A stretch of DNA of 38,057 nt from Guillardia theta CCMP2712 (Eukaryota; Protista; Cryptophyta), in NCBI RefSeq assembly GCF_000315625.1, contig NW_005434560.1, positions 57,978 through 96,034 of the forward strand, read 5' to 3'. A program made the translations under genes and the position numbers. The notes beneath the pieces were generated by a model, which searched no databases, was not told the origin of the DNA, and saw only the letters and a program-made list of their open reading frames with translations. Positions 1,931 through 32,622 of this stretch are shown here, one piece after another; positions within the stretch are counted from its first letter, which is position 1; each line of letters begins with the position of its first letter.

Positions 1931-2278
1931 TCAAGGGCAGAGACGGTACAGCTTCTCCTTCCCCTGTGTCTGCAGCGTCTCCACCATGGCCTGCACAGAC
2001 TTGATGTCTCCCATCACCTGCTGCACCCCCGCGTGAACCTTGATCGCCCAGACATCGGCGTTCTCCTTGCATTGAGAGAAGTACCGCTTGTACTGGTTGT
2101 CGTCCCCGATGACCTCAAAGGCCTTGTTGCAGCAGTAATCCTTGAAGTTCTCATATGTGCTGAAGCATGAGGTAGACTCACAAATCTCCTCCTCCACCGC
2201 CACATCCTTCGTCGCACACACGATGCCGCGCAGCTCTGATACAAAATCCGACACACTCATCTGAGGCCGGCCCGGCAT
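1931..2278 (-). CDS. Hypothetical protein (115 aa; alternative ATG at 2260)
   Basis: ATG-initiated ORF, globular composition, T10A8 tract ~40 nt upstream. Confidence 0.7.
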   Translation of the reverse strand: MPGRPQMSVSDFVSELRGIVCATKDVAVEEEICESTSCFSTYENFKDYCCNKAFEVIGDDNQYKRYFSQCKENADVWAIKVHAGVQQVMGDIKSVQAMVETLQTQGKEKLYRLCP

Positions 2279-2315
2279 TGCTTGCCCCTACGCTTGCCGT
2301 TGAGCCCCGCGACCG

Positions 2316-2333
2316 TTTTTTTTTTAAAAAAAA
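2316..2333. promoter_or_regulatory. T10-A8 tract in divergent promoter
   Basis: Lies between divergent genes starting at 2278(-) and 2410(+). A second TTTTTTAAAAA lies at ~2357-2368. Confidence 0.5.
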
Positions 2334-2409
2334 GAATTCAAATCCCCCTCCGGACCCTTTTTTAAAAACAGGGCCGCCACTGGCCATTCCCACGCACCAC
2401 CTACCACGC

Positions 2410-2676
2410 ATGGCCACCACGCCGCAGCTCGCCCCCTGGCTCATCAAGTCGCTCAACGAGGACACCATATTCGTCAAGCTTGCAAGAAAGGCAGAATGCA
2501 GCGAGGATGAGGACGACTTCGACGGGATCCTGTCCCCGCTGCCGACCAAGGTTGATCTGCAGGTGCCAAATACCCCAGTGAAGAAAAGGAAGACCTTCAC
2601 GCCGATCCACTCGCCGGTAGAATCCGACGCCGAATCCTCCTCCCTATCCGACTCGGACTTCTCCTTGAATGAATAA
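2410..2676 (+). CDS. Small acidic/Ser-rich protein with NLS-like KKRK and S/T-P sites (88 aa)
   Basis: First ATG of track ORF 2278..2676. Stop codon overlaps AATAAA. Motif TPVKKRK. Confidence 0.7.
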   Translation: MATTPQLAPWLIKSLNEDTIFVKLARKAECSEDEDDFDGILSPLPTKVDLQVPNTPVKKRKTFTPIHSPVESDAESSSLSDSDFSLNE

Positions 2677-2738
2677 AAAAAAAGGGATCCATCCATCACT
2701 TAGCACACCCCCGCACCACGCACGGCAAAACAACATCG

Positions 2739-3650
2739 ATGTCCCTCTCAGGGAAGTACGACCACGTCCTGATCCACAGCATCATCGACCCGGCGTCGCT
2801 GCCCGCCTTCACCGACTTCCTCATCGAGATGAGCAACTACATCGTCGCCCCGAAAAACGAGCACAGCGACGCGGTGCAGAGGGCGGCGTTCTACGGCTTC
2901 GGTGACATCCATTTCCGCGTCTCAGTCTTCCGCCTCCTGCAAGCATGCTTCATGGCCGAGTGGTACTGGTCCTCCGAGGTAGTGCCACACCGCTGGGAGA
3001 TGCTTGTCCACATCCCCACAAGGCACAACATCACGGCCGCCCAGCTCGAGCGCTTCTGCTCCTTCTGCCGCAACGGGATCAGCTGCGACGTCATCGAGCG
3101 CGGCATCAACAACGGGCTCGTCGTCTTCCTCGACCGCATCGACAAGGGCAAGAACCACGCGGGCTGGATGCGGCACCGCCTGCGCATCGCCTGCGACCGG
3201 CACAGGGAGCGGATGCGGATGCAAGAGGAGCGGGACAGGATACGGAGCGAGACGGGCATGGAATTCACCACCAGCAACATGCTCTACTTCTATCACGAGT
3301 GGCAGAACACCCGCATCGACATGCAGGCCCTCCGCGAGACGATCGAGGAGCTCAACAACAGGAACATCCAGATGACCCGCAGGGTGCACGAGAACGCCAG
3401 CTTCATAAACACCCTCTGCACCTCGGTGATGAACATCGCGGAGTCCATGCGGGCGGAGCTCAACGGCGAGGCGCTCGACGCCTTACAGGAGCACCTGACC
3501 CGCATCCAGGACATGAGCCGGCAGGCCAACAGCCTCTCCAATAACCTGCGCACGAGCTCTGTCCTCTACCGGTCGAGGACGGGCAACACCCTCGACGACC
3601 TGCTCATCGTCGTCGGGTCGGACGAGGATGACGGAATGGTCATCCAATAA
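2739..3650 (+). CDS. Hypothetical protein with C-terminal coiled coil (303 aa)
   Basis: Long ATG ORF with strong GC3 codon bias. Stop overlaps AATAAA. Confidence 0.85.
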   Translation: MSLSGKYDHVLIHSIIDPASLPAFTDFLIEMSNYIVAPKNEHSDAVQRAAFYGFGDIHFRVSVFRLLQACFMAEWYWSSEVVPHRWEMLVHIPTRHNITAAQLERFCSFCRNGISCDVIERGINNGLVVFLDRIDKGKNHAGWMRHRLRIACDRHRERMRMQEERDRIRSETGMEFTTSNMLYFYHEWQNTRIDMQALRETIEELNNRNIQMTRRVHENASFINTLCTSVMNIAESMRAELNGEALDALQEHLTRIQDMSRQANSLSNNLRTSSVLYRSRTGNTLDDLLIVVGSDEDDGMVIQ

Positions 3651-3657
3651 AGGATCA

Positions 3658-4104
3658 TTAAAGAACGGAAGACCGCGGCTTCCTGATGCAGATCAGCAGG
3701 TTCTTGTACACCCGCGGACTCTGCTCCGACAGCGTCAGGAGGTAGTCCTGTTGGTACCGCTGATCGAACCTCGCGTCGTTGCTATCCAGCATCCGCCACG
3801 CCACGAACGTCCAGTCCTGACCCCGCATCCATCGGTGGCACACGCGGCAGAACACCCGGAACACACTCCTCACGCACTGGACGTGCTGGACCGCCGCATT
3901 CCCCCCCTTGTACACCATGGGGGAGACGATCCTCAGACCCTCCGGCCCGTACGTCAGGCGCTCTTCCGAGAGGGGGCCAAAGGAATGCCCCTGCATCGCG
4001 AGCTCGTCCTCTCTCTGCAGCAGGTCCAAGAAGTCATGGATCAGGCGGTTGTACCCCCACGGGCACTCCATCGCAGTATCCAGCCTACTCTGCATATGCT
4101 GCAT
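3658..4104 (-). CDS. Hypothetical protein (148 aa)
   Basis: Fits exactly between neighbours (convergent with 2739..3650), natural composition. Confidence 0.75.
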   Translation of the reverse strand: MQHMQSRLDTAMECPWGYNRLIHDFLDLLQREDELAMQGHSFGPLSEERLTYGPEGLRIVSPMVYKGGNAAVQHVQCVRSVFRVFCRVCHRWMRGQDWTFVAWRMLDSNDARFDQRYQQDYLLTLSEQSPRVYKNLLICIRKPRSSVL

Positions 4105-4217
4105 ACTTTACCGTCCCCCTCCCATGCACTCCCCAAATACACGGATGGAACGAAGCATTACACACAATCCATTTATTTACGATCCAGGCAATGGCACAAA
4201 CAAACAAAACAAAACAA

Positions 4218-4424
4218 ATGGCCCCGGGGTCATCCAGGAACGGGAAACACACGACCGCAGCCAGGCGCTTCCTCCTCGGCTTCATCCTCGCCATCTTCTC
4301 CCTGCAGATCTTCGCCATCTTCCTCTCCATCCAGATCTCCAAGGCCCTCCGCAACGTCCACCTCCCCCGCCTCCTCCCCGAGGACATCGGCCTCCTCGTC
4401 GCTTCCAAGGCATACACCCACTAA
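4218..4424 (+). CDS. Small single-TM protein (68 aa; alternative ATG 4191)
   Basis: Hydrophobic stretch FLLGFILAIFSLQIFAIFLSI; A-rich leader CAAAACAAAACAA before ATG. Confidence 0.6.
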   Translation: MAPGSSRNGKHTTAARRFLLGFILAIFSLQIFAIFLSIQISKALRNVHLPRLLPEDIGLLVASKAYTH

Positions 4425-4426
4425 GC

Positions 4427-4666
4427 TCACAACGTCGCAGTCTCCGCAGGGAAACGCACGAAGCCGTGCCGGATCTTGTACGCTAGATCCATCAGGTCCT
4501 TCATCTGGAACTCCATCTTCGTAAGGATCGCATCGCAATTCTCATCTTCATCCCCGGCAGGCATGCCAAACCGCGCCATGGATGAGCCCACAGAGCCATC
4601 AAGGCTGTCCACGTAGGCCTGGATCGCATCGATCTCCCGCAGCACGTCGCCCACAGAATCTCCCAT
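4427..4666 (-). CDS. Small coiled-coil protein, HGFVR-cap family (79 aa)
   Basis: Ends LAYKIRHGFVRFPAETATL; CATTTAA box 4697-4703 upstream. Confidence 0.8.
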   Translation of the reverse strand: MGDSVGDVLREIDAIQAYVDSLDGSVGSSMARFGMPAGDEDENCDAILTKMEFQMKDLMDLAYKIRHGFVRFPAETATL

Positions 4667-4707
4667 TTCCCTGCCATGCCGCCACCCATCCGCGTCTTAA
4701 ATGCGCT

Positions 4708-5610
4708 TCATCGCACGCGGCCCGACTGGAAATCGTGCAGCGCGCTCGCCACGGTGGCGAGGCACTGCTGCAGCGCGATAAGGCGGGGCTTCAGTTCCGA
4801 TGCCTCATGTTCCATACCGTCTGAATCATCTTCATCGTCTGGTTCTTCTTCAATCTCTCCGGGCGGAGATGGGCGGTGTTGTTTTGCATGGTTGATGCGA
4901 TATCTTTCGAATTCTTGATGATTCCGTGTCAGTTTCCAATCTAAATCCTTTTGAGATTGTAAAATCTCTGCATTCTTTTTAGCCAACGACGTTTCCATGT
5001 TACGCAAATCCGTTTTGATATCTTTCAATAGATGTTGTTCACGAATATTAATCTTATGTTCGACATCTTCATTGATTTTTGACTGGATATGTGCGTCCAC
5101 ATTCAAAAGAATTCTTTTTTCAAGTTCAATGGAATCCTTCTTGAAACCTTCATTGAGTCGTGTTTTCATATTTGCTATACCTTTCTGCAAATCTGTTCTC
5201 ACACCAGACAGTTCTGCATTGATTCTTTTTTGTTCTGTATCCAATCCTTGAACAAACTGTGTTTTCATATTTTCTATATCTTTATCGATTTTCGCAATCG
5301 CATCATTGTGCAATGTTTCATGAGTCTGCAGTTCTGTTTTTAGACTAGACAATTCTGCATCGATTCTTTTGTGTTCAGTATCCAATTCATTAAACCTGAC
5401 AGCCAGATCATTCACCCTCGTTAAAATATCATCAATTGCTTCAACCAATTCATCATGATGATTTACTCCCAGCACACCTATCTGTTGATCATCCCCGGAT
5501 GCCGCATCCCCGTCCCCACCGGATGACGAATTCTCGGCGGCGGCAGGGGATGGGAACACCGGTGCAGCGCTGGATTGATTCTTGTTCTTCTTTTTAGCCC
5601 CAATCAACAT
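4708..5610 (-). CDS. Coiled-coil protein with internal duplication, divergent cap SGRVR (300 aa)
   Basis: First ATG at 5610 with CATTTAA box at 5637-5643. Repeat LDTEHKRIDAELSSLKTELQ / LDTEQKRINAELSGVRTDLQ. Confidence 0.85.
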   Translation of the reverse strand: MLIGAKKKNKNQSSAAPVFPSPAAAENSSSGGDGDAASGDDQQIGVLGVNHHDELVEAIDDILTRVNDLAVRFNELDTEHKRIDAELSSLKTELQTHETLHNDAIAKIDKDIENMKTQFVQGLDTEQKRINAELSGVRTDLQKGIANMKTRLNEGFKKDSIELEKRILLNVDAHIQSKINEDVEHKINIREQHLLKDIKTDLRNMETSLAKKNAEILQSQKDLDWKLTRNHQEFERYRINHAKQHRPSPPGEIEEEPDDEDDSDGMEHEASELKPRLIALQQCLATVASALHDFQSGRVR

Positions 5611-5653
5611 CCTCCCTGTCCCGCCCACTGCACCCCTTAAATGCTCTCCCGCG

Positions 5654-8600
5654 CTAACGGATGAAGCCGTGCTCGTACTGCCAGAAGATCCTGGACGCCT
5701 TCTCGAGGTCGGCCTGCAGAGCACGGAGGCGGGGGGCCAGGGCTTCGTTGTACTCCTCCGCTACAGCATGGCCCTTCTCGCTGCGATCAGAGCTTCGGGG
5801 GGAGGCCGTAGGAGAACGTGCCTCCAGCGCGGTGACCTTCCCTACCAGGTCCATCACCTCTTCCTCTAAAGTGTTCAGCTTCGTATCCTTCTCTTGAACC
5901 ATATCCAGTGCACTCTTTGCAATGTGTTGAACGTTGTTGATCCGAGTGCCCAAGTTATCGAATTCTTTCGTGATTTCGTCTTTGAAAGCATTCAACGCAG
6001 AATCGTCCGGGACAACAGGCGCGGGAGGGGGGAACTTAGAAACGGCATCCACCTTGACATCCAGTTCACCCTGTCTCCCCTCCAATGCCTTGATGGCTTC
6101 ATCCTGCCTGGCATCCACTTCCTTGACAGCATCCAATGAAGCTTCCAGCTCTGTCGCCTGGCGCAGTGCCCTTTCAACGAACTCATTCTGTGATTCGGCC
6201 AATTCAGACACAGCCACCACAGTCTTTTGGAAGGTCTCCATACGGGCCTCCATCCCTGTTGTTTTCTCCTGACACACCCTCTCAGCCTCGGTTCTCGCCT
6301 CTCCTAGCATGGTTCCTTTCCATGCATCCAAATCGGGCTGGTTTCTTGTAATGGCGGAATGTTCTTTTTTGACTCCCTCGATTTTCTGTTCAAGGCCATC
6401 CACACGAAGCTTCAGACTCCCCGATTCATTCTTGAGAGCCTCTATTGAAGTAAAAATTCCAGTATCTTTCTCATGCTGCTGTTGCATTAGTTTTTCCTGC
6501 TTCATATCCACATCCTCGATACCCTTTTGCAACCTTCCAATATCAGTAGCCAATACACCCGACATTTCCAGGTATTCCGTAATCGACTCACGCACTTTGG
6601 ACATACTCACATCAAAGTCACGTATCCTCTGCTCGATATCTTCCATACGGGTGACCAGCTTGCCCACCTTCCCCTTCTCAGAACCATCCCAGCCACCCGT
6701 CACATCCGAACGCTGGCCATCCTTGTTGGAACCGCGGTTGATTTGGCTGGGGATGGCGGCCGTGCGTTGCTCATTCATTTCCTTGATTTCCGATTGCAGA
6801 GTCTCCATAACACCGTTCATTTTCTGCATCGCAATTGTGAGTTCTTCCACCGCATGTCGCTGATGTTCCACCAAAACTATATTATCATTGACATCCTTTT
6901 GCATCTTCTGCAATTGCATATCCGTGGTTTCTGTACAGGTTTGGTAAGTCCCCCGCATGAGCTGCATCGTCTGCTTCAATTTAGCAATATATTCCTCCAT
7001 CTCCTTTTTCCTTTTCGCCCAATCACTGGCCTCCTCCGACATGCCGTTGTCCTGTGGGTTGTAATGGTCCGGCACTGACTCCCAGATATCATTCACATTT
7101 TTTTCAATCCTGGCTAGTTCATTCTTGAAAGACTGCATCGATTCATCCATGGTGATTTTCCAGGTGCTCACTTCCTTGTTCGAATCAGTCTGTTTACGTC
7201 GAAATTCACCCAACCTATCCAACTCCAAGTCCATGTTCTTCATATTCGTAGACAGACCAATGGTATCTTTCTGCAACGACAAAAATCTATCGTCCCATTG
7301 CAACTCTGACTGCTTCGTATTGTATGTAATCTCCCGTATTTGTTTTGTATGATCACTTACCTTCTTCTGCAATCTTTCGATCTCATCTTGCATATTTTTC
7401 GATTCGTCCTTTCCATCGTACTGGATGTCCTCTTCTATCTCCCCTGAACCATGGCCTGTTGTTGGTGGGATGGGCACACGACCTCGATGATTCACCTCAT
7501 TACGAAGCTCTTCAACATGTTCAACAATGTCAAGAACGTTTGATTTCAGATCCTCAACCTTCAGGTCAACCTTTCGCACTACATTATCAATATAGGGAGT
7601 GTAAATCCTTTCGAATGCATCCTCGACGATATCATGGCAAAATATCTGCAGATTACCACGCTGCTCCTTCCCACGCAGGTCCATCTCTGTCACCAGATCT
7701 TGTTTCACCCTTTCGAAATCCTTCCTGTGTGTAACTCGGATCGTCTTCAATTCGCCATCGAAATCATCAACCCTTGCAATCAAACCTCTCAGATCACGCT
7801 GAATCGAGCTGAAATTAGTAAAAGGAATACCCGGGGTTGCATCAGTGGCTTTACCCTCTGCGGTGTTCTGGGGTACATTCCTGGTTAGTTGGTCTTCTAA
7901 CCCCTTAATTTGGAATGACAGTTTTGTGTACTTCGTTTCAAATTCGGTCCTCATCGCTGAGTTGTTATTATCATTGTGTTGCAAAGTTGACTTGTAGTCC
8001 TTCTTACACTCTTGACTCACTTCCTGTATATTCTTGTAAAGCTTCATGTACTCAGCCTTCAAACCATCCAGTTCACCCTTATCAATTGCATGTATAGCTT
8101 CAACATCTTGCAATTTTTCATCGATGTAAACCTCGAGCTTCTTCTGAATACCAGCTACTTCTGACAACATCTTGGCAGCATCCACGGATCCTCTCTGCAC
8201 GTTTTGTGGTTTTGACTGAAGCCCCTTGACTTTATCTTCCAAACTCTGAAGCTCCTTTTCAAGGTCTTCCATCACAGAAGACTGCTTCCCAATGATATCA
8301 TTGAATTTCGTGACATCTTCACGAACCCTCTCTATATTCAATTCCAAGCTACTCCTGTGTTGGTCCAACACCTGTCTCATACCCGTCATTTCAATTTTGA
8401 CCTCACGTTGAAAACTATTGACACGCTGATCACTTTCAAGCACACGGCGTTGAAAATCGGTGACTTTGGACTCCATGTCATTAACAGAATTCTTGATCTC
8501 CTCGTACGCATTCGTAAAAACATCGATGTGATCTGCACATTGTTTGGCAGCCTGTTTCATAGTATCAACATCCTGCAAGACACCCTGGTCCTTCGATTCA

Positions 8601-9418
8601 ATCGCTTCAATCCGGCGGGTAATATCTTCACGGGTGTCCTTGTATTTGTTCACCAGGTCCTCCACTTTGTGTTCAGCGACAAATATCGAATTTAGCTTTT
8701 GAAGTAAATTATCCCGCACATCTTTGATCTGATGTTCGAATCTATCCGTGCGTTCTCTGTAAGATCGGTCCTCTGCGTCATACCGCGCCTGTTTGTGTTT
8801 CATTTCTTCCACTGCATCGTTGATGTTCTTCATTCTCTTATCTGTCAATTCCATCTTTGTTTCGTTCTGCTTGATCGCCACACTCTGCGGCTCTATCTTC
8901 TTTTCAATCACAACTTCCAGTAACCCCAGAATCTTTTCTTCCAGGGCTGCATCATCGATGTCAACCCGGGACCTTGCCTCCGTCTTCGACTCCGCGTAAG
9001 GTTTCAAGGAGTTGTACTTCTCATCGATCATTCTCTGTAGATCGTCCGCATGTTGCTTGATCTGTTTCGTGACCATCTCGTGAATCTCATCGTGGTTCTT
9101 CGCTACATACTCGTAGCTGGCATAGTTTTTCAACTTATCAGAAAGCTCATCCACTTGTTTTTTCAAAGCCTGCTCGCGTATTTTTTGTTTTTTTTTATCC
9201 TCTTTGTAACTACTGATGAACGTGGCTATGTCTGTTTTTTTTCTCTCTTCCATCTGCTTATCCCTCTTACGTTCAGCTGCTCTTTCCTCTCTTTGTTTCT
9301 CCTGTGATTCTTCAAGTTCCTTTCTCCTTACATACTCCTCGGGACTAGGCGGTGATTGTGGAATATTTTGTTTACGTTTTTCTACTACATCCTTATCCTC
9401 TGTATCATCAAGCACCAT
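5654..9418 (-). CDS. Very long coiled-coil protein ending in HGFIR (1254 aa)
   Basis: 3.76-kb uninterrupted ORF, E/K/Q/L heptads throughout. First ATG 9418, GATTTAA box 9452-9458. Confidence 0.93.
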   Translation of the reverse strand: MVLDDTEDKDVVEKRKQNIPQSPPSPEEYVRRKELEESQEKQREERAAERKRDKQMEERKKTDIATFISSYKEDKKKQKIREQALKKQVDELSDKLKNYASYEYVAKNHDEIHEMVTKQIKQHADDLQRMIDEKYNSLKPYAESKTEARSRVDIDDAALEEKILGLLEVVIEKKIEPQSVAIKQNETKMELTDKRMKNINDAVEEMKHKQARYDAEDRSYRERTDRFEHQIKDVRDNLLQKLNSIFVAEHKVEDLVNKYKDTREDITRRIEAIESKDQGVLQDVDTMKQAAKQCADHIDVFTNAYEEIKNSVNDMESKVTDFQRRVLESDQRVNSFQREVKIEMTGMRQVLDQHRSSLELNIERVREDVTKFNDIIGKQSSVMEDLEKELQSLEDKVKGLQSKPQNVQRGSVDAAKMLSEVAGIQKKLEVYIDEKLQDVEAIHAIDKGELDGLKAEYMKLYKNIQEVSQECKKDYKSTLQHNDNNNSAMRTEFETKYTKLSFQIKGLEDQLTRNVPQNTAEGKATDATPGIPFTNFSSIQRDLRGLIARVDDFDGELKTIRVTHRKDFERVKQDLVTEMDLRGKEQRGNLQIFCHDIVEDAFERIYTPYIDNVVRKVDLKVEDLKSNVLDIVEHVEELRNEVNHRGRVPIPPTTGHGSGEIEEDIQYDGKDESKNMQDEIERLQKKVSDHTKQIREITYNTKQSELQWDDRFLSLQKDTIGLSTNMKNMDLELDRLGEFRRKQTDSNKEVSTWKITMDESMQSFKNELARIEKNVNDIWESVPDHYNPQDNGMSEEASDWAKRKKEMEEYIAKLKQTMQLMRGTYQTCTETTDMQLQKMQKDVNDNIVLVEHQRHAVEELTIAMQKMNGVMETLQSEIKEMNEQRTAAIPSQINRGSNKDGQRSDVTGGWDGSEKGKVGKLVTRMEDIEQRIRDFDVSMSKVRESITEYLEMSGVLATDIGRLQKGIEDVDMKQEKLMQQQHEKDTGIFTSIEALKNESGSLKLRVDGLEQKIEGVKKEHSAITRNQPDLDAWKGTMLGEARTEAERVCQEKTTGMEARMETFQKTVVAVSELAESQNEFVERALRQATELEASLDAVKEVDARQDEAIKALEGRQGELDVKVDAVSKFPPPAPVVPDDSALNAFKDEITKEFDNLGTRINNVQHIAKSALDMVQEKDTKLNTLEEEVMDLVGKVTALEARSPTASPRSSDRSEKGHAVAEEYNEALAPRLRALQADLEKASRIFWQYEHGFIR

Positions 9419-9484
9419 CACTCCCACCTACACACCCACTGAAGCCACCGCTTAAATCCGCACTGCAAGGCACCCTCCCCCTCG

Positions 9485-9664
9485 TTACAATTTCGCTGCC
9501 TCCCTGCCCTCGAAGCGGATGAATCCATGCTTGATCTTCCACGCGACCTTCTTCAGCTCATTGACGCTCTCGCGGATGCTCCTGACCTCCTCCTGAAGAT
9601 CGCCCGCTCCATCGAACTCCGCGGATATCAGCGGCACACGCACTTCCTTCGCCCTTCCACTCAT
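9485..9664 (-). CDS. Small coiled-coil protein, HGFIR-cap family (59 aa; absent from ORF track)
   Basis: Manual translation MSGRAKEVRVPLISAEFDGAGDLQEEVRSIRESVNELKKVAWKIKHGFIRFEGREAAKL*. ATG overlaps the TGA of the upstream gene (ATGA). TATAAG at 9692-9697. Clear similarity to 4427..4666. Confidence 0.85.
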   Translation of the reverse strand: MSGRAKEVRVPLISAEFDGAGDLQEEVRSIRESVNELKKVAWKIKHGFIRFEGREAAKL

Positions 9665-10743
9665 CCCCTGGCAGCCCCCCCGCCAGAACCGCTTATATCC
9701 ACCCTGGAGAGATAGAGCTCCAGCAGTCGCACGGGGCGGGGGTCCCAGAACACGGTCACCGAGTCTCCATCCCCCCTAAGGAGCCAGACCCTCCCCGGGG
9801 CGTGGAGCCAGCACCACTTCTCTTCCAAGATCCGGCGAAAGTCCACAGCCTCATGATAGAGAGGCAGTTCAGGGTACAGCTGCTGCAACACAGGAATCCA
9901 GTCTAAAGCAGTCCGGCCCTCCTCCTCGAAGTCCGCCAGGGACATGGGCGCGCGCCTCCTCTGGTATGTCGGCTTATGGAAGTATACGGCCTGGCTCACG
10001 GAATGGTACAGTCCGGAGAAGCGGTGCATGTACTGTAGGATTGCCCCGCAGTGGACGTCGTCGTGCATCGTCGCCCCGTGGTACGTGTCAGTCGCCGCCT
10101 CGAAGTGGAACCTTTGCAAGCTCAGCCCGTCCGACCCCGGGACGGAAGCGGGCACGGGCGTCTCCCGGGCAAGGAGCCAGAGGTACCGGAAGAGACAGAA
10201 GAAGGCGTCCAGAGCCTGGACCTTCGCGAGATCGGAAAGCCTGTGACCCTCCTTCCCCTCATGCTGAAGGACCTCTCGATCGTGCACGACGTCTACCCCG
10301 ATGACATCGCTCTCGTAGAAGCCATAGGCGGCGAAGAAGCCGAAGCGGGCGAGAAGCTTCCAGCACAGATCCCTTGCCCCAGGCAGGCACGACACCCGGG
10401 TCCAGTTGAGCTGCACGTTGTCCAGCGCGCCGCTCAGCTCCCGCCACCCCATCGAGTCCACCGGCTCCTCCGAGATCTCGAGCTCCTTGCAGCCCGGCAC
10501 CACGTCCTGCATCCTCCTCTCGTCCACCTCGAGCACCAGATGCGCCATCCTCGCCAGCACGCACCCTTGCACATGCATCCGGCTCAGAATGACCTGCGCC
10601 GTGCTCTTCTCCGTCGGGTCCGTCCTCGTCAGCCACTCCTCCATCATCTCCCCGACGTCCACCCCCTCTGGTATCTTCCCTCCCTCCGCCCTCGGGTCCA
10701 GTGCCCTCTCCACCTCCGCGTTCAACACCGCCCATCGCTCCAT
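9661..10743 (-). CDS. Hypothetical protein (360 aa)
   Basis: First ATG 10743, CATAAAT box 10777-10783, globular aromatic-rich composition. Confidence 0.85.
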   Translation of the reverse strand: MERWAVLNAEVERALDPRAEGGKIPEGVDVGEMMEEWLTRTDPTEKSTAQVILSRMHVQGCVLARMAHLVLEVDERRMQDVVPGCKELEISEEPVDSMGWRELSGALDNVQLNWTRVSCLPGARDLCWKLLARFGFFAAYGFYESDVIGVDVVHDREVLQHEGKEGHRLSDLAKVQALDAFFCLFRYLWLLARETPVPASVPGSDGLSLQRFHFEAATDTYHGATMHDDVHCGAILQYMHRFSGLYHSVSQAVYFHKPTYQRRRAPMSLADFEEEGRTALDWIPVLQQLYPELPLYHEAVDFRRILEEKWCWLHAPGRVWLLRGDGDSVTVFWDPRPVRLLELYLSRVDISGSGGGAARG

Positions 10744-10830
10744 TCGCTTTCCTACCACACTCTCACGTTCACTCTCATTTATGGAAAACCAAGTGAGCAG
10801 AATAGATGTTTATTTTTGCTTCATTAGCTC

Positions 10831-11883
10831 TCAACCGAAAAATTCCCTTGCGCAGGGGAAAGCGTACCGCTGTCTGGTGTCCTTGATAGTGCTCAAACTG
10901 AGGTCTTTGTCACGCCGATGATACCCGTGATACATCACCCAGGGTGCGTACACTTTCAGTATGCCCCTTCTGGCGACGTAGCCGGACAACCAGATATCAT
11001 CGTTATAGAAACACCCCCGGGGAAGTGTATCCAGGTATGTCCAGACGTCCTCCCCGAAGTTCCTGACGCGGTGGGCCACGGCGGTCCAGCCGACCAGCCA
11101 GCCGTTGCAGACCCGCGGGGTGGTCGCGAACGTGTTGTACAGGGAGTAGGTCGTGAACGCCTTGAAGTTGCTGTGGTGATTGTTCCACATCTCGCAACCG
11201 AAGGAGAGCGCCATGCCCTCGCGATCGATGCGGGTGGCGAGCCATTCAACCGTGTTCCTGTTGTACGCTATGTCGTCGTCGAATGTGATGATGACGGTCT
11301 CCGGGTCGTGCTCCAGCAGCAAGGCGCCGAGGACCTTGGTCCCGGGACCCCAGTCCTTGTCGAGGAACTGGACCGTGATCTCGGGGGACTCGAACACGTC
11401 GTGCTTGGTCTCGTTGAAGCTCGCGGTGGAGTAGTTCTTGAACCAGCTCAACACGCTCTCTATGCTCTCGTTGTAATCCGCGACGTTGATGTCACAGTCC
11501 GAGAGGGTGCATATGGTCTTTTCTTTCTTCCTGTATGTCTTCGGGATGGTGATGATCACCCGGTCTGGCTTCTGCGACTGCGAAAAGACGCTATCCAGGC
11601 AGGGTGCCATGTGGAAGATCCGCTCGCTGAACGTGGTGATGCTCACCACCGTGCGCGGGGGCTCGTGCAAGGCGAGGGCGACCTGCGCTGCGGAGATTAG
11701 CGCAATGCTCTCGCCGAACTGCAGCAGCGTGAACTGGACAGTGATCATCATGAGGGTGCAGATGATCAGCCCCATGCGGACCGACGATGCACAGCTATCC
11801 GATGCTGTACAGAGCTGGCGTTTTTCCTCCGGCTGGCTCGCCTGTTCCTCCAGGAGCTTCTGTGTCTCATCCGACGACTGCAT
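10831..11883 (-). CDS. Type II membrane glycosyltransferase, GT-A fold (GT2/GT64-like)
   Basis: N-terminal TM, then VVSITTFSERI, DWGPGTKVLG, IITFDDDIAY (DxD) and NDDIWLSG motifs. TATAAAA ~50 nt upstream of ATG 11883. Confidence 0.85.
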   Translation of the reverse strand: MQSSDETQKLLEEQASQPEEKRQLCTASDSCASSVRMGLIICTLMMITVQFTLLQFGESIALISAAQVALALHEPPRTVVSITTFSERIFHMAPCLDSVFSQSQKPDRVIITIPKTYRKKEKTICTLSDCDINVADYNESIESVLSWFKNYSTASFNETKHDVFESPEITVQFLDKDWGPGTKVLGALLLEHDPETVIITFDDDIAYNRNTVEWLATRIDREGMALSFGCEMWNNHHSNFKAFTTYSLYNTFATTPRVCNGWLVGWTAVAHRVRNFGEDVWTYLDTLPRGCFYNDDIWLSGYVARRGILKVYAPWVMYHGYHRRDKDLSLSTIKDTRQRYAFPCAREFFG

Positions 11884-11991
11884 AGAGCGTGGATGACAAT
11901 GTGAATATGATCTGTTCTCTAACCTGGCGTTTTTATAAACCCTTGACAAAAAAAAGACAAAAAAGGATTAAAAAAAACACAACAGAAAAAT

Positions 11992-12418
11992 AAAACTCAT
12001 CGCCCTCATACCCGACCCAGGGTCCCCAGGGAAAGGCCCCCCCTTGGCCAGATTTCTGAAAACCGTTAAACCGTTAAACCGTTAAAAGTCAACGGTCTTT
12101 AAAACCTTTAAAGAAGGTTCGCCGGACAGTATACATATAGTATGTATATAGTATATAGTATGTATGTATATGTATGTATGTATATTGTATGTATATACAT
12201 ACTCTCTTAATCAACAACCCGATGCCAACTTCACAGGTGGAACGATCACTCATGATATGCGAACCTTATTTAAAATGATTGAAGGAGAAGGATTGCCGGA
12301 CTATGGTTGAAGCTTTTAACGGTTTAACGGTTTAACGGTTTAACGGTTTTCAGAAATCTTGGCCAAGGGGGGGCCTTTCCCTGGGGACCCAGGGTCGGGT
12401 ATGAGGGCGATGAGTTTT
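11992..12418. repeat. Long inverted repeat (arms 11992-12088 and 12313-12418) with (AAACCGTT)3/4 iterons around an AT-rich core
   Basis: Arms are reverse complements except one mismatch, one extra base and one extra octamer; 224-nt spacer. Confidence 0.95.
12129..12202. repeat. AT-rich (TA/TATG)n tract
   Basis: gtatacatatagtatgtatatagtatatagtatgtatgtata...; ends in the 16-bp palindrome GTATGTATATACATAC (12187-12202). Confidence 0.9.
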
Positions 12419-12490
12419 TTTATCACCTGTTTTTTTTTGCCGCGGCAAGCATGGCGAGCGCCGCCATGCAGGCACCGATGCTATGTACAG

Positions 12491-12847
12491 ATGCCACCGC
12501 GGCAGAAGGAGGAGTGGAAGCCCAGCGACGACCTTCTCGATGTGTGGTACAAGAACTGGATGCCAGAGCCCATTGTGTGCTGGAGCTGTGGGCACTTCCT
12601 TGGGGAGAAGTGCCACTACAAGGGCGGGAGGAACGTTCCCTGCCGCCACGGAGGGGAGAGCGGGACGAGCCGAAGGAACCCGTTCCAGTGCAACGGTTTC
12701 GCCTCCCAGGAAGAGCCGGCTCCTGTCCGGCGGAACCATACCCCCCTCCCGAACTACTTCGCCCTCGTGGATGGGCACGTGATGTACGTAGAGGTCAATG
12801 GGGAGGAGAAAGTATTCGTGCCGCTGAATGAGACACACGTGGCATAG
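12491..12847 (+). CDS. Small Cys/His-containing protein, possible Zn-binding (118 aa)
   Basis: In-frame ATG at 12491 (track start lies inside the inverted repeat). CWSCGH...CH...CRH...C. AATAAA at 12881. Confidence 0.7.
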   Translation: MPPRQKEEWKPSDDLLDVWYKNWMPEPIVCWSCGHFLGEKCHYKGGRNVPCRHGGESGTSRRNPFQCNGFASQEEPAPVRRNHTPLPNYFALVDGHVMYVEVNGEEKVFVPLNETHVA

Positions 12848-12937
12848 GCAGTGTGAAAGCTTATCTTGCTCTCTCCCGCAAATAAAAGGATGCATCCTTC
12901 ATGAAGGGAACGACGCAGTGGGGCACGACACTGCCGC

Positions 12938-13624
12938 ATGAGCCAGAGGCCCAAGAGAAGGTGTGTGGAGGACGCCATGAACCGCGTCCGGGAGGTTCTC
13001 GAGTGGGAGCAGCTGGATGAGCGCAGCGCGCAGTTCCGCTCCGTCGCACAAGCGCTGGAGGCGGAGTTCGAGCGGGAGAGGCTCATGCGGAGGACTTGTC
13101 CGGAGATTCTACAAGAGGATACCAGGGAAAATAGCAACGACGACGATGAGGATGAGGGGGAGGAAGACAGCGGCGCCAGCGAGGTGAGCTTCGACTCGGA
13201 CTGGTACCCCGGGAAGAAGGGGGGTGGTTTCTTCCGGTATGACGAGGATGGTGAGAGCGAAGCAGAGGACGAAAGTGAATCAGAAGAAGCCGATGATATT
13301 ATCATCATTTCGGATGAGCTTGCAGACGACATCAAAACGGAAGAAATCAGCGATGTCGATACAGACATCCTTAGTGATACCGATACGGAAAACCTCAGCG
13401 ACACCGAGACGGTCGTTGACTGCAACACTACAGAAATCACACATCCTTTCTCTCATGAAGGCTCCATTGCATCCTCGAACGGTCCCGCAGAGAGGCAGGC
13501 ACTCGAGGCCGATGGGGACAGCTTCTTGTCCTCGCTGGGAGTAACAGGGAACGCCACCGCCTGCGAGGATGGCGGCCCGCTCGAAGTGATGAGCAGGTCG
13601 TGCTTGGAAGCGCCCGAGCCGTGA
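12938..13624 (+). CDS. Acidic, largely disordered protein with N-terminal basic NLS-like motif (228 aa)
   Basis: RPKRR, helical N-terminus, long D/E/S tracts, IIIISDE. Confidence 0.8.
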   Translation: MSQRPKRRCVEDAMNRVREVLEWEQLDERSAQFRSVAQALEAEFERERLMRRTCPEILQEDTRENSNDDDEDEGEEDSGASEVSFDSDWYPGKKGGGFFRYDEDGESEAEDESESEEADDIIIISDELADDIKTEEISDVDTDILSDTDTENLSDTETVVDCNTTEITHPFSHEGSIASSNGPAERQALEADGDSFLSSLGVTGNATACEDGGPLEVMSRSCLEAPEP

Positions 13625-13785
13625 GACAGCAGGGCACAGCCCCCGGCGCTGAAGATAGGCGGGTCTCTCTGGAATTCTTCCGCGTCAGGGACGACGAGCC
13701 TCAGTGTCTGGTAGCACACCATCAGCGCTACTGAGCCCATGACGGCAAGCACCATCGGGGCGACGTAGGCCAGGACAGGGATCAT
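13453..13785 (-). CDS. Possible small membrane protein (110 aa)
   Basis: Hydrophobic N-terminus, A-rich leader; fills the gap 13625-13785 but overlaps the end of 12938..13624. Confidence 0.4.
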   Translation of the reverse strand: MIPVLAYVAPMVLAVMGSVALMVCYQTLRLVVPDAEEFQRDPPIFSAGGCALLSHGSGASKHDLLITSSGPPSSQAVAFPVTPSEDKKLSPSASSACLSAGPFEDAMEPS

Positions 13786-13848
13786 TCTTCCTACTGTTTC
13801 TTTTTTTTTATTAAAATTGAGAGTGTGTTTCTTATACTTCCGCGTGTT

Positions 13849-14658
13849 TCAGACATGCCTTGCCATGCCTTTCCCTCCCATCACAGGCTTCCCCGTGGGA
13901 ATATCCTGGTCCTTCACGACGTACTCCACTATGTGTGCGTACTGCTTTGGGCATAGTTTCACGTACGCGTGCGCCGCGGTGAAATCGGTGTAGATGACGA
14001 TGTTGTTGAGTGAGATGAGGAGGTAGACGATATACTCGAGTATAATCACGTTGCTCATACAGGGGTCTGCCATGTTGTTGAAGGCGATGTAGACGATCCC
14101 AAAGGCGGCGAAGAAGACAATGCAGAGGCAGGTCAACGCCGCGGTGGCGTAGGCGGTGAATTTCGATATGCTCCCATACTCGAATACCGACAGGCTGTAG
14201 TTGAGCTGCGCCCAGATGTAGGTCAATGCCAGGACCCCTGCCCCAAGGAGGTGCACGTCTCCGTGGTCAGAAATGTTGTCGTAGAGCACAACTGCGATGG
14301 TGCTTGCGTAGCCGAGGAGGGCCAGCCATGTGACCACCCCGCGGTTCAGGAGGAGGTGGTTGCGGCTGCTGATGATGCCGAGCACTACCCAGGACAAAAT
14401 GCCGCTGATGACCATGAGGCTCGCCGTGCCCTTGTCCACCGCGAGCTTGTCGCTGATGTAGAAGAGCGACTGGCAGTACGGGGCGTCGAAGTTCCGGATC
14501 CCCCCCTTGCTGAACATGAGGTAGAAGAAGACGCTGTACTGCATGACAAAGGCCGCCGCCGCCAGCTGTGTCAAGACGAGCAGCTCCCCGAAGGCCACCT
14601 CTGTCCAGAGCCTCCGGAGGTTCTTCTTGGTGACCACCGCCTCGTACTTCATCTTCAT
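13849..14658 (-). CDS. Six-TM protein, Frag1/DRAM/Sfk1 (TMEM150)-like
   Basis: ~6 hydrophobic helices with family-like motifs YISD after TM1, VHLLGA at TM4 and LEY in TM6. TATAAAA 14678-14684. Confidence 0.6.
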   Translation of the reverse strand: MKMKYEAVVTKKNLRRLWTEVAFGELLVLTQLAAAAFVMQYSVFFYLMFSKGGIRNFDAPYCQSLFYISDKLAVDKGTASLMVISGILSWVVLGIISSRNHLLLNRGVVTWLALLGYASTIAVVLYDNISDHGDVHLLGAGVLALTYIWAQLNYSLSVFEYGSISKFTAYATAALTCLCIVFFAAFGIVYIAFNNMADPCMSNVIILEYIVYLLISLNNIVIYTDFTAAHAYVKLCPKQYAHIVEYVVKDQDIPTGKPVMGGKGMARHV

Positions 14659-14688
14659 GCCTTCCTTGCAATACCTGTTTTATATCCT

Positions 14689-29470: not shown

Positions 29471-31180
29471 TCAGAACGAGTCGGCGTCCTCCACGCTGGG
29501 CGCGGCCCTCTTGCGGCAGGTCTTGGCCTCCTGGGCGGCGTTCCCCATCCCGGGGACGGAGGGGGCGCGGGAGGAGGAGAGGTTGAGCTGCATGCAGAGG
29601 TAGTTGGGGACGGCCTGCATGTCGAGGTCCACGGCGTAGCCCTCCGGGTTGAGCTTGGGTCCGAGGTCGATGTGGACGCGGCAGCACTTGGGGACGGGGT
29701 AGGACGCGTGGTAGGGCTGCCAGTCCATGGACACCGATGGGTCGACCGGGAGCTCCTTGGAAGGGTCCGACAGGATGCGGAGGTCGAGCCGGACGATGAT
29801 CTCCCGCTTGAGCTCCTTGCCGTCCTCCTCGAAGTTGAAGAAGCGGTGGGTCTCGTGGACGAGGCAGCGCCGCACCGCGTCGAAGCTGATCTTGGCGTTG
29901 CCGTCCTTGCGGATCACGACGGTGCTGTCCCGGGTCTGGGGGGCGTGGAGGAGGAAGCGGAGCACGTCGTCGTCCGTGCCGGCAGAGACGTCGATGCCGA
30001 GCAGACGGAGGAAGTCGATGATAGGGGCGGCGCGGTAAACGAGCCTTTTCTTCCACGTGTCTTCATCAACCTTGTAGGAGACCCAGGATTTGACGACCAT
30101 CAGTTGCAGGCAACCGCAACTCGCGGCGACCTCGAGCAGCTGGCACGCGCGCTTCACGGTGGAGCAGTTCGTGTACCGCATCAGCGTGGGGCCGTCGATG
30201 CGCACCTCGTCGATCATGGACTTGCCCATCTCAAAGTCGAGGCAGGCGTTCGAGATCGTGACGCCGGCGCCGTCCTCATCGACTGAGGCCCGGAGGAGAC
30301 AAGAGACGCTCCTCAGGAGCATCACCTCCCCGCCGTTGCTGAAGAGGTAGTTGGAGCAGGGGCGGCAGCCCTCGGGGGCGTAGGTCTTGCACACCTCCGT
30401 GATGGTCTTCTGCTCCTCGAAGGTGGCGGGGAAATCACCCATCGCGGGTACGAAGGAGTACAGCGTGAGCGGGATGATCTCGATGCTCTTGATCGTGACC
30501 ACGTCCCCCGGAGTGTCGACCTTCGTCGCATTGTTCGGCTTGAGAAAGAGCTTGACGAGCGTGAAGGGGTGGATGGTGTCCACATCCGGGAACAGCGCCC
30601 TCTGCCCGGTCTTCTTGTTCTGCTTCTCGAACTCGAAGGTCTTTGTCGTCGTCGAGAGCCGCAGGGTGCAGCCCGACTGGACCAGGGTAGCGACGTCCTT
30701 CCTTACGGCGCCCTTGTACTGCTGGTTGCTCTCGTGCTTGTCGAAGGAGTAGATCATCAGGCCGCGCCTCCCGTCCGCATCGACATGGATCTCACTCAGG
30801 AACTCGGCGTTCTTGAGCGGCTTGTCCTCCAGCGGCGCCTTGCCCCAGCCCGCGGAGAAGGGCGCCAGCACCACAAAGTGGCTCGGCAACGACCTGGAAT
30901 CGCCGCCCGACATCGTCTTCGCCTGGTTGAACACCCCCAGGCGGCAGTACACCGGGTCCACCACCATCGCGATCACCGTGGGGAGGTTCTCGTGGCGGTC
31001 CTCCGGGGAGGGGAGCACCAGCCCCTCCAGCCACAGGTTGCTGGGGTGGAGGAGCGGCTCGGGGACCAGGAGCTCCGTGTTGACGGTGGCTCCTGGGATG
31101 GATCCTGGGGTAGCTTCTACAACATCCTCAACCTCCATGGAGGCATCGGACTCGGGGCGGTTGCTCTTGTTAATCGGCAT
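29471..31180 (-). CDS. Hypothetical beta-rich protein (569 aa)
   Basis: Long ORF with strong GC3 bias; C-terminal RKR NLS-like motif. Confidence 0.88.
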   Translation of the reverse strand: MPINKSNRPESDASMEVEDVVEATPGSIPGATVNTELLVPEPLLHPSNLWLEGLVLPSPEDRHENLPTVIAMVVDPVYCRLGVFNQAKTMSGGDSRSLPSHFVVLAPFSAGWGKAPLEDKPLKNAEFLSEIHVDADGRRGLMIYSFDKHESNQQYKGAVRKDVATLVQSGCTLRLSTTTKTFEFEKQNKKTGQRALFPDVDTIHPFTLVKLFLKPNNATKVDTPGDVVTIKSIEIIPLTLYSFVPAMGDFPATFEEQKTITEVCKTYAPEGCRPCSNYLFSNGGEVMLLRSVSCLLRASVDEDGAGVTISNACLDFEMGKSMIDEVRIDGPTLMRYTNCSTVKRACQLLEVAASCGCLQLMVVKSWVSYKVDEDTWKKRLVYRAAPIIDFLRLLGIDVSAGTDDDVLRFLLHAPQTRDSTVVIRKDGNAKISFDAVRRCLVHETHRFFNFEEDGKELKREIIVRLDLRILSDPSKELPVDPSVSMDWQPYHASYPVPKCCRVHIDLGPKLNPEGYAVDLDMQAVPNYLCMQLNLSSSRAPSVPGMGNAAQEAKTCRKRAAPSVEDADSF

Positions 31181-32522: not shown

Positions 32523-32622
32523 NNNNNNNNNNNNNNNNNNNNNNNNNNNNNNNNNNNNNNNNNNNNNNNNNNNNNNNNNNNNNNNNNNNNNNNNNNNNNN
32601 NNNNNNNNNNNNNNNNNNNNNN
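32523..32622. other. Assembly gap (100 N)
   Basis: Run of N. Confidence 1.

Follow-up and report, generated by a model that had tools for sequence, protein, structure and literature searches.

Four adjacent, co-oriented genes in the nuclear DNA of the cryptophyte Guillardia theta CCMP2712 encode coiled-coil proteins of very different size (59, 1254, 300 and 79 aa) whose C-terminal heptad modules, hereafter termed tails, are homologous as judged by alignment statistics. The block belongs to a compact, intronless, duplicated element and lies within the 38,057 nt stretch analysed here (the window; contig NW_005434560.1, positions 57,978 to 96,034 of the forward strand). By comparison across related loci, the tail is the constrained part of these proteins, while the rods are free to vary and diverge fast. 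On the available sequences the tail-bearing family is real and undescribed; its function we can only infer.

Organization of the cassette

A preliminary description of the window had reported four co-oriented genes, each with its own AT box. The coordinates, strand, sizes and C-terminal strings all matched the ORFs, and the sequence AT[TA]TAAG was present 32–39 nt upstream of all four ATGs. The features of the block and of the neighbouring gene are as follows.

4427–4666, minus strand: 79-aa gene, a small tail-bearing paralogue with two helices, the motif and 8 further residues
4454–4537, minus strand: tail of the 79-aa protein, 28 residues (44–71, the last being the motif Arg), with 8/9 a/d positions hydrophobic
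4696–4702, minus strand: box ATTTAAG of the 79-aa gene, ATG 36 nt downstream
4708–5610, minus strand: 300-aa gene, ORF from its ATG
4711–4794, minus strand: tail of the 300-aa protein, 28 residues (273–300, ending SGRVR), with 19/28 columns invariant
5636–5642, minus strand: box ATTTAAG of the 300-aa gene, ATG 32 nt downstream
5654–9418, minus strand: 1254-aa gene, ORF from its ATG
5657–5740, minus strand: tail of the 1254-aa protein, 28 residues (1227–1254, ending HGFIR), with 24/28 columns invariant
9451–9457, minus strand: box ATTTAAG of the 1254-aa gene, ATG 39 nt downstream
9485–9664, minus strand: 59-aa gene, a minimal tail-bearing paralogue with one helix, the motif and 9 further residues
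9515–9598, minus strand: tail of the 59-aa protein, 28 residues (23–50, ending HGFIR), with 9/9 a/d positions hydrophobic
9692–9698, minus strand: box ATATAAG of the 59-aa gene, ATG 34 nt downstream, within the 360-aa coding region
9661–10743, minus strand: neighbouring 360-aa gene, without a tail; synteny anchor and link to mirusvirus-like contigs

Across the window, AT[TA]TAAG occurred seven times, counting both strands, and four of the seven occurrences were those upstream of the cassette genes. The stop of the 360-aa gene overlaps the start of the 59-aa gene, and the box of the latter falls within the 3' end of the former. The ORFs of the element as a whole were dense and without introns, with one stop/start overlap. 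When the boxes were compared between loci, that of the 59-aa gene was in identical position in 5/5 loci and that of the 300-aa gene was 32 nt upstream of the ATG, again in 5/5. The box of the 79-aa gene was kept in loci L005, L001, L086 and L002, at 35–47 nt, and the box of the 1254-aa gene was also conserved.

Homology of the tails

All four proteins had been proposed to share a C-terminal heptad module closed by an HGF[IV]R cap. Homology of the four tails was upheld, but the cap is absent from the 300-aa protein, which ends in SGRVR; HGF[IV]R is the tail end in the other three. In a six-frame translation (73,981 residues), HGF[IV]R was seen three times against 0.07 expected, each time at the end of a cassette ORF. 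When the C-terminal 40 residues were aligned locally and compared with 2000 shuffles, the z values were 12 (59-aa and 79-aa proteins), 8.4 (59 and 1254), 4.2 (79 and 1254) and 5.5 (1254 and 300), which places the tail similarity beyond chance. The 300-aa tail showed no significant similarity to either small protein in this test; its link is transitive only, through the 1254-aa tail (z 5.5) and the tail of a fifth gene found in relatives (z 6.7–9.0).

The 59-aa and 79-aa proteins matched each other by BLASTP with E=5e-8 and aligned over their full length, the 79-aa protein having a 29-residue insert; by this alignment they are full-length paralogues. A profile spanning the small proteins from end to end gave no significant score against the large ones, so the similarity between the two groups is limited to the tail. 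The previously described division into two subtypes, the small outer genes and the large inner genes, was confirmed on the sequences.

The tails were also pooled into a profile from which one class was omitted per run. This leave-one-out test clearly recovered the 59-aa class (E 7e-4 to 1e-2) and recovered the 1254-aa class by rank only. The 79-aa tails of the window and of L005 came near the top, yet with an E of 1.6, and those of L001 and L086 were not recovered; the 300-aa class was missed entirely. An iterated search with all five classes (the four cassette genes and the fifth gene) over approximately 13,000 ORFs across the examined loci revealed no sixth tail-bearer.

Coiled-coil structure

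Judged by a 3–4 hydrophobic periodicity over at least four heptads without helix breakers, the proteins have the canonical heptad pattern of coiled coils. Strong heptad scores were obtained for a fraction of 0.19–0.62 of 28-residue windows, compared to 0.01–0.03 in shuffles. All tails comprise four heptads in one common register and close with G-x-x-R. Their a/d positions were hydrophobic in 8–9 of 9 cases in all five classes, and the hydrophobic face widens in the final two heptads.

For the 300-aa protein, the order is a basic low-complexity N-terminus, a coiled-coil rod with an internal repeat, a Pro/acidic linker and the tail, followed immediately by the stop; heptad segments were located at 47–150, 189–225 and 264–297. 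The 1254-aa protein has a long segmented coiled-coil rod (14 heptad segments), a Ser/Pro/acidic linker and the tail, again with an immediate stop. Basic clusters could be read from the translations at the N-termini of both.

AF2 modelled the 79-aa monomer with low confidence (pLDDT 63), placing helices at 4–32 and 44–66, the second of which stops just before HG. A profile of the small proteins searched against the PDB matched only to de novo designed coiled coils (8qae, 8a3k and others; best E=8e-8). These designs share the textbook heptad pattern with the tail helix and differ in having no HG-x-x-R end, and the match is one of pattern rather than descent.

Conservation across loci

The order of the cassette, together with its boxes, was retained in four other loci. 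A second collinear copy is present on another G. theta scaffold with a DNA identity of 83–92%, and further collinear copies were found in an NCBI assembly, a JGI metagenome and a Logan run. Wherever an ORF was present, it was uninterrupted between its ATG and its stop. The notion of a set four-gene unit did not survive this comparison. The 1254-aa gene is wholly absent from L002, making a fixed four-part complex unlikely, and a fifth coiled-coil gene of approximately 255 aa with the same tail is present in three relatives, a few kb away and outside both the cassette and the window, which shows that use of the module is not confined to the cassette.

The dN/dS values were 0.13–0.19 for the 59-aa gene, 0.16–0.31 for the 79-aa gene, 0.57–0.73 for the 300-aa gene and 0.36 for the 1254-aa gene, all in the range of purifying selection. 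Homologues of the 79-aa protein were 72–99% identical, and those of the 1254-aa protein were 1215–1254 aa long. For the two large proteins the identity was concentrated in the tail: 67–93% compared to 33–46% in the rod for the 300-aa protein, and 87–97% compared to 63–64% for the 1254-aa protein. Likewise, when the two G. theta copies were compared, their DNA identity fell in the rods and recovered at each tail. In the last 33 residues, 29/33 columns were invariant for the 59-aa protein (11 sequences) and 16/33 for the 79-aa protein (8 sequences); in the 28-residue tails of the 1254-aa and 300-aa proteins, the invariant columns given above were counted over four and five loci, respectively. 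Loss of the motif in homologues, or a 59-aa ORF without conservation, would have told against the preliminary description. Neither was seen: the motif was kept in homologues, and the 59-aa ORF was conserved in 11 sequences under the low dN/dS noted above.

Among more distant loci, the cassette was absent beside the 360-aa homologue in 80/80 cases, which marks it as an invention of a narrow lineage. No ORF resembling the 59-aa or 79-aa gene was found after the 360-aa homologue in relatives at 24–49% identity.

A mirusvirus-like element

The context of the cassette was approached through the neighbouring 360-aa gene, for which 265 representative homologues and 204 metagenome loci were obtained (dN/dS 0.10–0.15). 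Distant homologues were situated within 10 kb of genes for TBP, heliorhodopsin, HRDC and GIY-YIG proteins. In six long contigs with a 360-aa homologue, TBP was detected in five ORFs and heliorhodopsin in one, and two more genes of the window had homologues in such contigs. TBP and heliorhodopsin are among the core functions of mirusviruses, a recently recognised abundant phylum with a herpes-like virion module and mostly unannotated genes (PMC12768974). Mirusvirus capsid genes have been listed for G. theta, with the scaffold unspecified (PMC10827195). On these gene associations, and on the dense ORFs and collinear copies described above, the cassette is placed in an endogenous element of mirusvirus-like character within the algal genome. 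Neither TBP nor heliorhodopsin was found in the window itself, and no gene of the virion module (HK97-fold capsid protein, triplex proteins, portal, terminase) was recognised there (Pfam), so a virion role for the cassette is putative and drawn from its context. The copy in the window is integrated and partly truncated, and its genes may have lost their function.

For the 360-aa protein, AF2 gave a model of high confidence (pLDDT 92). Its fold matches were weak (best E 0.2–1.4, TM approximately 0.3), with recurring matches to two chains of the HSV terminase complex in the PDB and to approximately five herpesvirus terminase-subunit-2 homologues in BFVD.

Searches for known families

The four proteins had previously been assigned to no named family, and this remained so. 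Pfam produced nothing above its cut-offs: the weak hits (Baculo_PEP_C, TRIM_CC, ACBP4_C, Nup88, ATG17_like and Fib_alpha) scored 17–21 bits against gathering cut-offs of 24–43, and the 59-aa and 79-aa proteins had no hit at all. Over 27 ORFs of the window and eight ORFs of one relative, hits were likewise sub-threshold only. Golgin GRIP and other known C-terminal targeting domains were rejected, as no such Pfam family was matched at E up to 0.01 by any of the four proteins. SNARE/syntaxin-type proteins were also ruled out, there being no such Pfam hit in the four proteins and no hydrophobic C-terminal or transmembrane segment visible in their translations. A neighbouring 303-aa protein had a sub-threshold Syntaxin hit (16.6 bits, cut-off 26.7).

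A tblastn search of the 1254-aa protein against phage records returned nothing. IMG/VR was likewise scanned without a hit, using the 1254-aa and 360-aa proteins singly and the alignments of the 360-aa family and of the small proteins. A PDB sequence search with the 360-aa family profile and four other window proteins was also empty.

Discussion

The explanation we favour, tentatively, is that the cassette encodes coiled-coil paralogues, arrayed in tandem within an endogenous mirusvirus-like element, which possess a common C-terminal oligomerisation or docking module. Each gene has its own TATA-like box, and the encoded alpha-helical proteins have rods from a single helix (59 aa) to approximately 1200 residues. 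The tail would serve as the common assembly module, through which the proteins may bundle with each other or attach to a single partner belonging to the element, for example in a capsid-proximal or tegument-like layer. The rods could then be spacers of graded length, and the two mini-proteins, being the same helix without a rod, might cap or compete for the same site. Of the preliminary interpretation, the homologous tail module and the two subtypes are supported, while a hetero-oligomeric filament or fibre, with the mini-proteins as adaptors, chaperones or terminators, is conjectural.

Plain tandem paralogy without a shared partner is a somewhat unlikely alternative, though one with several observations in its favour. 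Here, the tail would be each protein's own folding trigger or end-cap in a homo-oligomeric coiled coil, and the family would have arisen by duplication with growth and shrinkage of the rod. The full-length paralogy of the 59-aa and 79-aa proteins is in keeping with this, as are the regular four-heptad segment of the tail, the termination of the AF2 helix of the 79-aa protein at Gly, the PDB matches to designed coiled coils only, and the absence of the 1254-aa gene from one relative. A generic trigger, however, would not need identical W/Y, H, G and terminal R residues across paralogues with wholly dissimilar rods, and a 59-aa protein that is barely more than a tail would be odd if the tail acted in self-folding alone.

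A more specific form of the docking explanation is that, in a mirusvirus lineage associated with cryptophytes, the tail is a novel 'address' domain. Its task would be to bring the length-graded rods (59 to approximately 1250 residues) to a single site on the particle or in an assembly compartment, with the rod-less mini-proteins as competitors or caps. In so definite a form we consider the proposal unlikely.

The tail could instead direct the proteins to a host structure (membrane, cytoskeleton or nuclear envelope), after the fashion of cellular coiled-coil tethers that end in short targeting domains, with the rods spanning distance and the mini-proteins blocking or tuning the host site. A long variable rod joined to a short conserved C-terminal module, made in several lengths, is a design that fits such tethers. 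Fast divergence of the rods (dN/dS up to 0.73) is to be expected of proteins facing the host, and the N-terminal basic clusters of the 300-aa and 1254-aa proteins would also be compatible. Against this, the proteins resemble no known targeting domain (nothing in Pfam above its cut-offs) and lack a transmembrane segment, and no tail-bearing host homologue emerged from the protein searches. A host-directed role is regarded as improbable.

Two further readings were rejected on the codon comparison, the intact ORFs, the dN/dS values and the boxes. Constraint at the DNA level, such as a promoter or recombination sequence keeping the 3' ends of the genes alike, might be suggested by the 1254-aa and 300-aa tails stopping 5–12 nt before the next box, and by a synonymous divergence lower in tails than in rods between the two G. 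theta copies. This was largely refuted by the codons: paralogous tails vary at synonymous sites with the residues kept, and dN is far below dS inside the tails. Furthermore, the gap from motif to next box ranges from 5 to approximately 55 nt, and the tails of the 79-aa protein and the fifth gene are not followed by a cassette box, leaving this reading very little probability. That the four ORFs represent exons of host genes joined by splicing, or that the small ORFs are not genes at all, is similarly hard to credit: the NCBI models GUITHDRAFT_145950 (of which the 79-aa ORF of the window is the start) and GUITHDRAFT_120169 do splice across cassette ORFs, but the ORFs are complete wherever present, evolve at dN/dS well below 1 and have their own conserved boxes, while the spliced extensions are unconserved and one model joins the final part of an ORF to the interior of the one that follows.

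For the favoured explanation, a common assembly module on paralogues of a viral element, three known systems are instructive. The first comprises cellular tethers with a short C-terminal targeting domain, namely GRIP golgins, PACT centrosomal proteins and KASH nesprins, the last with giant and mini isoforms. In these tethers the C-terminal module decides the place or partner of assembly, and, as in the cassette, a single short module follows weakly constrained rods of varied length, some proteins being nearly rod-less. The cassette proteins differ from them in having no sequence match (Pfam) and no membrane anchor, and in being tandem paralogues of a viral element rather than isoforms of a cellular gene.

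The second system, relevant in view of the herpes-like virion module of mirusviruses, is the capsid scaffold of herpesviruses, in which proteins with a common C-terminal tail bind the major capsid protein through it. There, as in the cassette, a single virus has several proteins with a common short helix at the C-terminus; the herpesvirus proteins use it to dock on one partner during assembly, as is proposed for the tail. The herpesvirus tail, however, is common to nested in-frame products of one protease-containing locus, whereas the tails described here belong to five separate paralogous genes. A nested scaffold of the herpesvirus type was excluded, as the cassette genes are separate, each with its own box and ATG, and the neighbouring ORFs contain no protease domain (Pfam). 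Long coiled-coil rods also set the present proteins apart, and no match in sequence or structure was found.

The third is the foldon of phage T4 fibritin, a C-terminal registration domain of a viral fibre. The likeness lies in a short module at the C-terminus of a coiled-coil rod, which fixes the register of the chains and their oligomeric state in the foldon and would do so here under the registration role raised in the preliminary description. In contrast to the foldon, which is a beta-hairpin on a single homotrimeric protein, the tail is helical and heptad-based and is common to paralogues, two of them rod-less.

To our knowledge, nothing is known of how mirusvirus particles are constructed beyond the capsid module. 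The family gives several points of entry for further work: a conserved and reusable tail on five coiled-coil proteins, varied rod lengths, a natural knock-out of the largest member and two rod-less versions. It may provide a compact system for how such viruses arrange their non-capsid layers, in a host that is a cultured and sequenced model alga. For this region, the public gene models of G. theta are best regarded as artefacts of a eukaryotic gene finder applied to viral DNA. Should the tail serve nothing but the folding of its own paralogue, this would be an ordinary lineage-specific gene family. If it is an address domain, it would be the first molecular handle on a tegument-like layer of herpes-related protist viruses.

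Cassette genes and their upstream boxes

The cassette consists of four tail-bearing genes, whose products end in a C-terminal heptad module (the tail), preceded in the two large ones by a long coiled-coil part (the rod). The C-terminal strings quoted in the preliminary description matched the translations of the four ORFs exactly.

Cassette ORFs, neighbouring gene and boxes (window positions)
4427-4666, minus strand: 79-aa ORF, cassette
4708-5610, minus strand: 300-aa ORF from its ATG, cassette; the open frame extends to a GTG at 5724
5654-9418, minus strand: 1254-aa ORF from its ATG, cassette
9485-9664, minus strand: 59-aa ORF, cassette
9661-10743, minus strand: 360-aa gene without a tail; its stop overlaps the start of the 59-aa gene
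4696-4702, minus strand: AT[TA]TAAG box of the 79-aa gene
5636-5642, minus strand: box of the 300-aa gene
9451-9457, minus strand: box of the 1254-aa gene
9692-9698, minus strand: box of the 59-aa gene
34011-34017: further AT[TA]TAAG box

Each cassette gene had been credited with its own AT box, and the heptamer AT[TA]TAAG was indeed present 32-39 nt upstream of each of the four ATGs, accounting for four of its seven occurrences on both strands of the 38-kb window. The box of the 59-aa gene sits within the coding region of the 360-aa gene. The boxes, 32-47 nt 5' of the ATGs, were kept in all relatives. In the window and its four collinear relatives alike, the 59-aa gene has its box 34 nt from the ATG, and the 300-aa gene 32 nt. 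TATTTAA-like or similar AT boxes lie 30-50 nt 5' of many other window ORFs, and related elements carry a TATA-binding protein gene of their own.

The 300-aa gene contains an internal 30-nt direct repeat (5214-5243 and 5355-5384, spacing 141 nt) giving two similar heptad stretches, with a weaker copy at 7133-7162 within the 1254-aa gene. Third-codon-position GC was 0.41 and 0.53 in the two rod genes (4708-9418) versus 0.73-0.93 in the flanking genes.

Two public models, GUITHDRAFT_145950 and GUITHDRAFT_120169 (window 4427-4666; 10001-10389 of L005, the second G. theta copy), splice across cassette ORFs. The first 78 residues of GUITHDRAFT_145950 are those of the window 79-aa ORF. One model continues beyond the stop into an opposite-frame region, and the other fuses the end of a 300-class ORF to a 79-class ORF. 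Both look like gene-finder artefacts; given the selection on the ORFs and the conserved boxes, spliced models for the cassette are unsupported.

Homology of the tails

The similarity of the tails exceeds chance. In the six-frame translation of the window, HGF[IV]R was observed three times against 0.07 expected, always at a cassette gene end. When the last 40 residues were aligned locally and compared with 2000 shuffles, z was 12 (59 versus 79 aa), 8.4 (59 versus 1254), 4.2 (79 versus 1254) and 5.5 (1254 versus 300), and the 300-aa tail matched neither the 59- nor the 79-aa protein. By BLASTP, the 59- and 79-aa proteins matched at E=5e-8; they align end to end, with a 29-residue insert in the latter. 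The BLASTP match of the 1254- and 300-aa proteins (E=0.045) was restricted to the final 28 residues.

Profile HMMs of the 28-residue tails were then used to search 13,372 ORFs, leaving one class out each time. The 59-aa class was recovered at E 7e-4 to 1e-2; the 1254-aa class headed the ranking, though only at E 1-14; for the 79-aa class E was 1.6 or worse; and the 300-aa class was not recovered.

The tail profile also revealed a fifth tail-bearing coiled-coil gene of ~255 aa, lying outside the cassette at a distance of a few kb, in the relatives L002, L001 and L005. Its stop immediately follows a tail ending in [HN]G[FM]YR, which scored z 8.4-11.5 against the 1254 tail, 6.7-9.0 against the 300 tail and more weakly against the 59 and 79 tails. 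It thereby connects the 300-aa class with the other classes. The four-tail alignment of the preliminary description was thus correct, with the qualification that the 300-aa protein joins the family only via the 1254-aa tail and the fifth gene. No sixth tail-bearing member was found among the sequences of all loci examined.

The window lacks the fifth gene because its collinearity with all relatives stops near 1938, inside a cut-short homologue of a 234-aa gene. This is the one truncation at the window edge (1-2378), outside which the fifth gene of the relatives would fall. Short imperfect repeats (895-1122) lie in the remaining 1.9 kb of the edge, as does a small inverted repeat (1687-1782).

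Copies, conservation and selection

L005, on scaffold JH993134.1, follows window 1937-15922 collinearly with a DNA identity of 83-92%; its ORFs of 360, 59, 1238, 336 and 79 aa are intact. Collinear copies also came from NCBI assembly GCA_036681025.1 (contig L001), from a Logan run (L086) and from a JGI metagenome (L002, a contig of 67 kb), with short ENA and Logan fragments as additional pieces. The order 360 / 59 / (1254) / 300 / 79 was retained at every locus, and all ORFs present were intact. In L002 the entire 1254-aa gene is missing and the intergenic DNA on either side of it remains, so at least one lineage can do without the largest member. Next to 360-aa homologues at more distant loci, the cassette was absent in 80 of 80 cases. 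It is a narrow-lineage invention.

dN/dS against three relatives, and invariant tail columns
360-aa gene: 0.10-0.15
59-aa gene: 0.13-0.19; 29/33 columns (11 sequences)
79-aa gene: 0.16-0.31; 16/33 columns (8 sequences)
1254-aa gene: 0.36-0.37; 24/28 columns (4 sequences)
300-aa gene: 0.57-0.73; 19/28 columns (5 sequences)

All tails are forms of a single homologous C-terminal module of four heptads, which is under purifying selection; the rods are fast-evolving and of very different lengths. Two findings that would have counted against the preliminary description did not arise: the motif is conserved in homologues, the tails being the most constrained part of the cassette proteins, and the 59-aa ORF is conserved as well. 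Identity in the last 30 residues was 87-97% versus 63-64% in the remainder of the 1254-aa protein, and 67-93% versus 33-46% for the 300-aa protein. Along the two G. theta copies, DNA identity was 0.90-1.0 in the 360-aa gene and the 59-aa gene, dropped to 0.46-0.84 within the rods and recovered to 0.85-0.95 in each tail.

A 303-aa neighbour without a tail (2739-3650, plus strand) has the same pattern of conserved domain and variable rod: when the two G. theta copies are compared, DNA identity is 91-99% over its N-terminal half and 51-65% over its C-terminal coiled-coil half. A Syntaxin match of this protein was sub-threshold.

Anatomy of the tail

Heptad periodicity was far above shuffles in all four cassette proteins. 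Counted back from the residue after the Gly, the a/d positions were hydrophobic at 8-9 of 9, in the same register, in all five tail classes. The motif Phe (Arg in the 300-aa protein) occupies an 'a' position and the motif Gly a 'g' position. The adjoining g and b positions of the final two heptads also frequently carry hydrophobic or aromatic residues, giving a wider apolar face. The PDB matches of the small-protein profile were de novo designed coiled coils only, and a low-confidence AF2 monomer of the 79-aa protein (pLDDT 63) placed a helix at 44-66, ending directly before HG. In the two large proteins a Pro/Ser/acidic linker leads into the tail and the Arg is the last residue; the two small ones have 8-9 conserved residues beyond it.

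Mirusvirus-like element context

A 569-aa ORF (29471-31180) is identical to a database protein whose 90% cluster is represented by a Guillardia theta CCMP2712 protein. With the match of the 79-aa ORF to GUITHDRAFT_145950, this marks the window as nuclear DNA of the cryptophyte alga and not as a virus of animals, people or crops. Its genes are densely packed, have no introns and, with few exceptions, are without Pfam domains. Homologues of the 360-aa gene form a large unannotated family (265 representative proteins, 204 metagenome loci). Within 10 kb of such a homologue, six long contigs carried a TATA-binding protein (5 ORFs), heliorhodopsin, HRDC, GIY-YIG and Cys-rich receptor-like domains (Pfam); homologues of two more window genes were also present in contigs with 360-aa homologues. 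TATA-binding proteins and heliorhodopsins are core mirusvirus functions (PMC12768974), and genomes with mirusvirus capsid genes include G. theta (PMC10827195). A mirusvirus-like endogenous element is well supported as the context of the cassette; it is taken as context and not as proven membership because no capsid, portal or terminase gene was recognised within the window.

Other features of the element were as follows. The AF2 model of the 360-aa protein was confident (pLDDT 92); a fold search gave no significant match, its weak top matches being repeatedly herpesvirus terminase subunit 2 (E 0.2-1.4, TM ~0.3). A 350-aa ORF (10831-11883, minus strand), flanked by the 360-aa gene and a repeat region, has an N-terminal hydrophobic segment, a DXD-like stretch and no Pfam match; it is present in the window copy only and absent from L001, L002 and L005. 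The inverted repeat at 11972-12438 has 79-nt arms, 87% complementary, based on arrays of an 8-nt AACCGTTT-type unit; one more such array, the third, lies ~20 kb off (32425-32473), and both L002 and L005 have conserved the repeats. The Cys-rich gene at 14689-20186 (minus strand), whose repeats resemble those of TNFR or ephrin receptors, reads as two overlapping ORFs in the window; its L002 counterpart is a single 1442-aa ORF spanning ~3/4 of that interval. An assembly gap of 100 N occupies 32523-32622.

Proposed working of the tail-bearing family

In this viral-element context there are five paralogous genes, each behind a promoter-like box of its own. We tentatively favour the reading that the tail serves all their products as an assembly module, by which these would either bundle together or dock onto a single partner that belongs to the element. 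The rods would serve as spacers, and the two mini-proteins (59 and 79 aa), offering the helix without a rod, may act as caps or competitors. The main rival, in which the tail is a private folding or trigger segment of each paralogue, seems doubtful. A host-directed address tag would fit the design equally well but lacks specific support, and we consider it quite improbable. Conservation imposed by overlapping DNA signals is largely excluded, because synonymous sites differ among the paralogous tails and, within the tails, dN falls well short of dS.

No cassette protein had a Pfam profile match above cut-off. Cellular coiled-coil tethers with short C-terminal targeting domains may work similarly, although the cassette proteins are without a membrane anchor. 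The shared capsid-binding tail of herpesvirus scaffold proteins may be another parallel in working, but the cassette is without a protease/scaffold locus. The C-terminal registration domains of viral fibres may likewise be similar in working, whereas the cassette module is helical and not a beta-hairpin. The tail-bearing family is a member of none of these three, and is best filed as a new version of an already known type of design.
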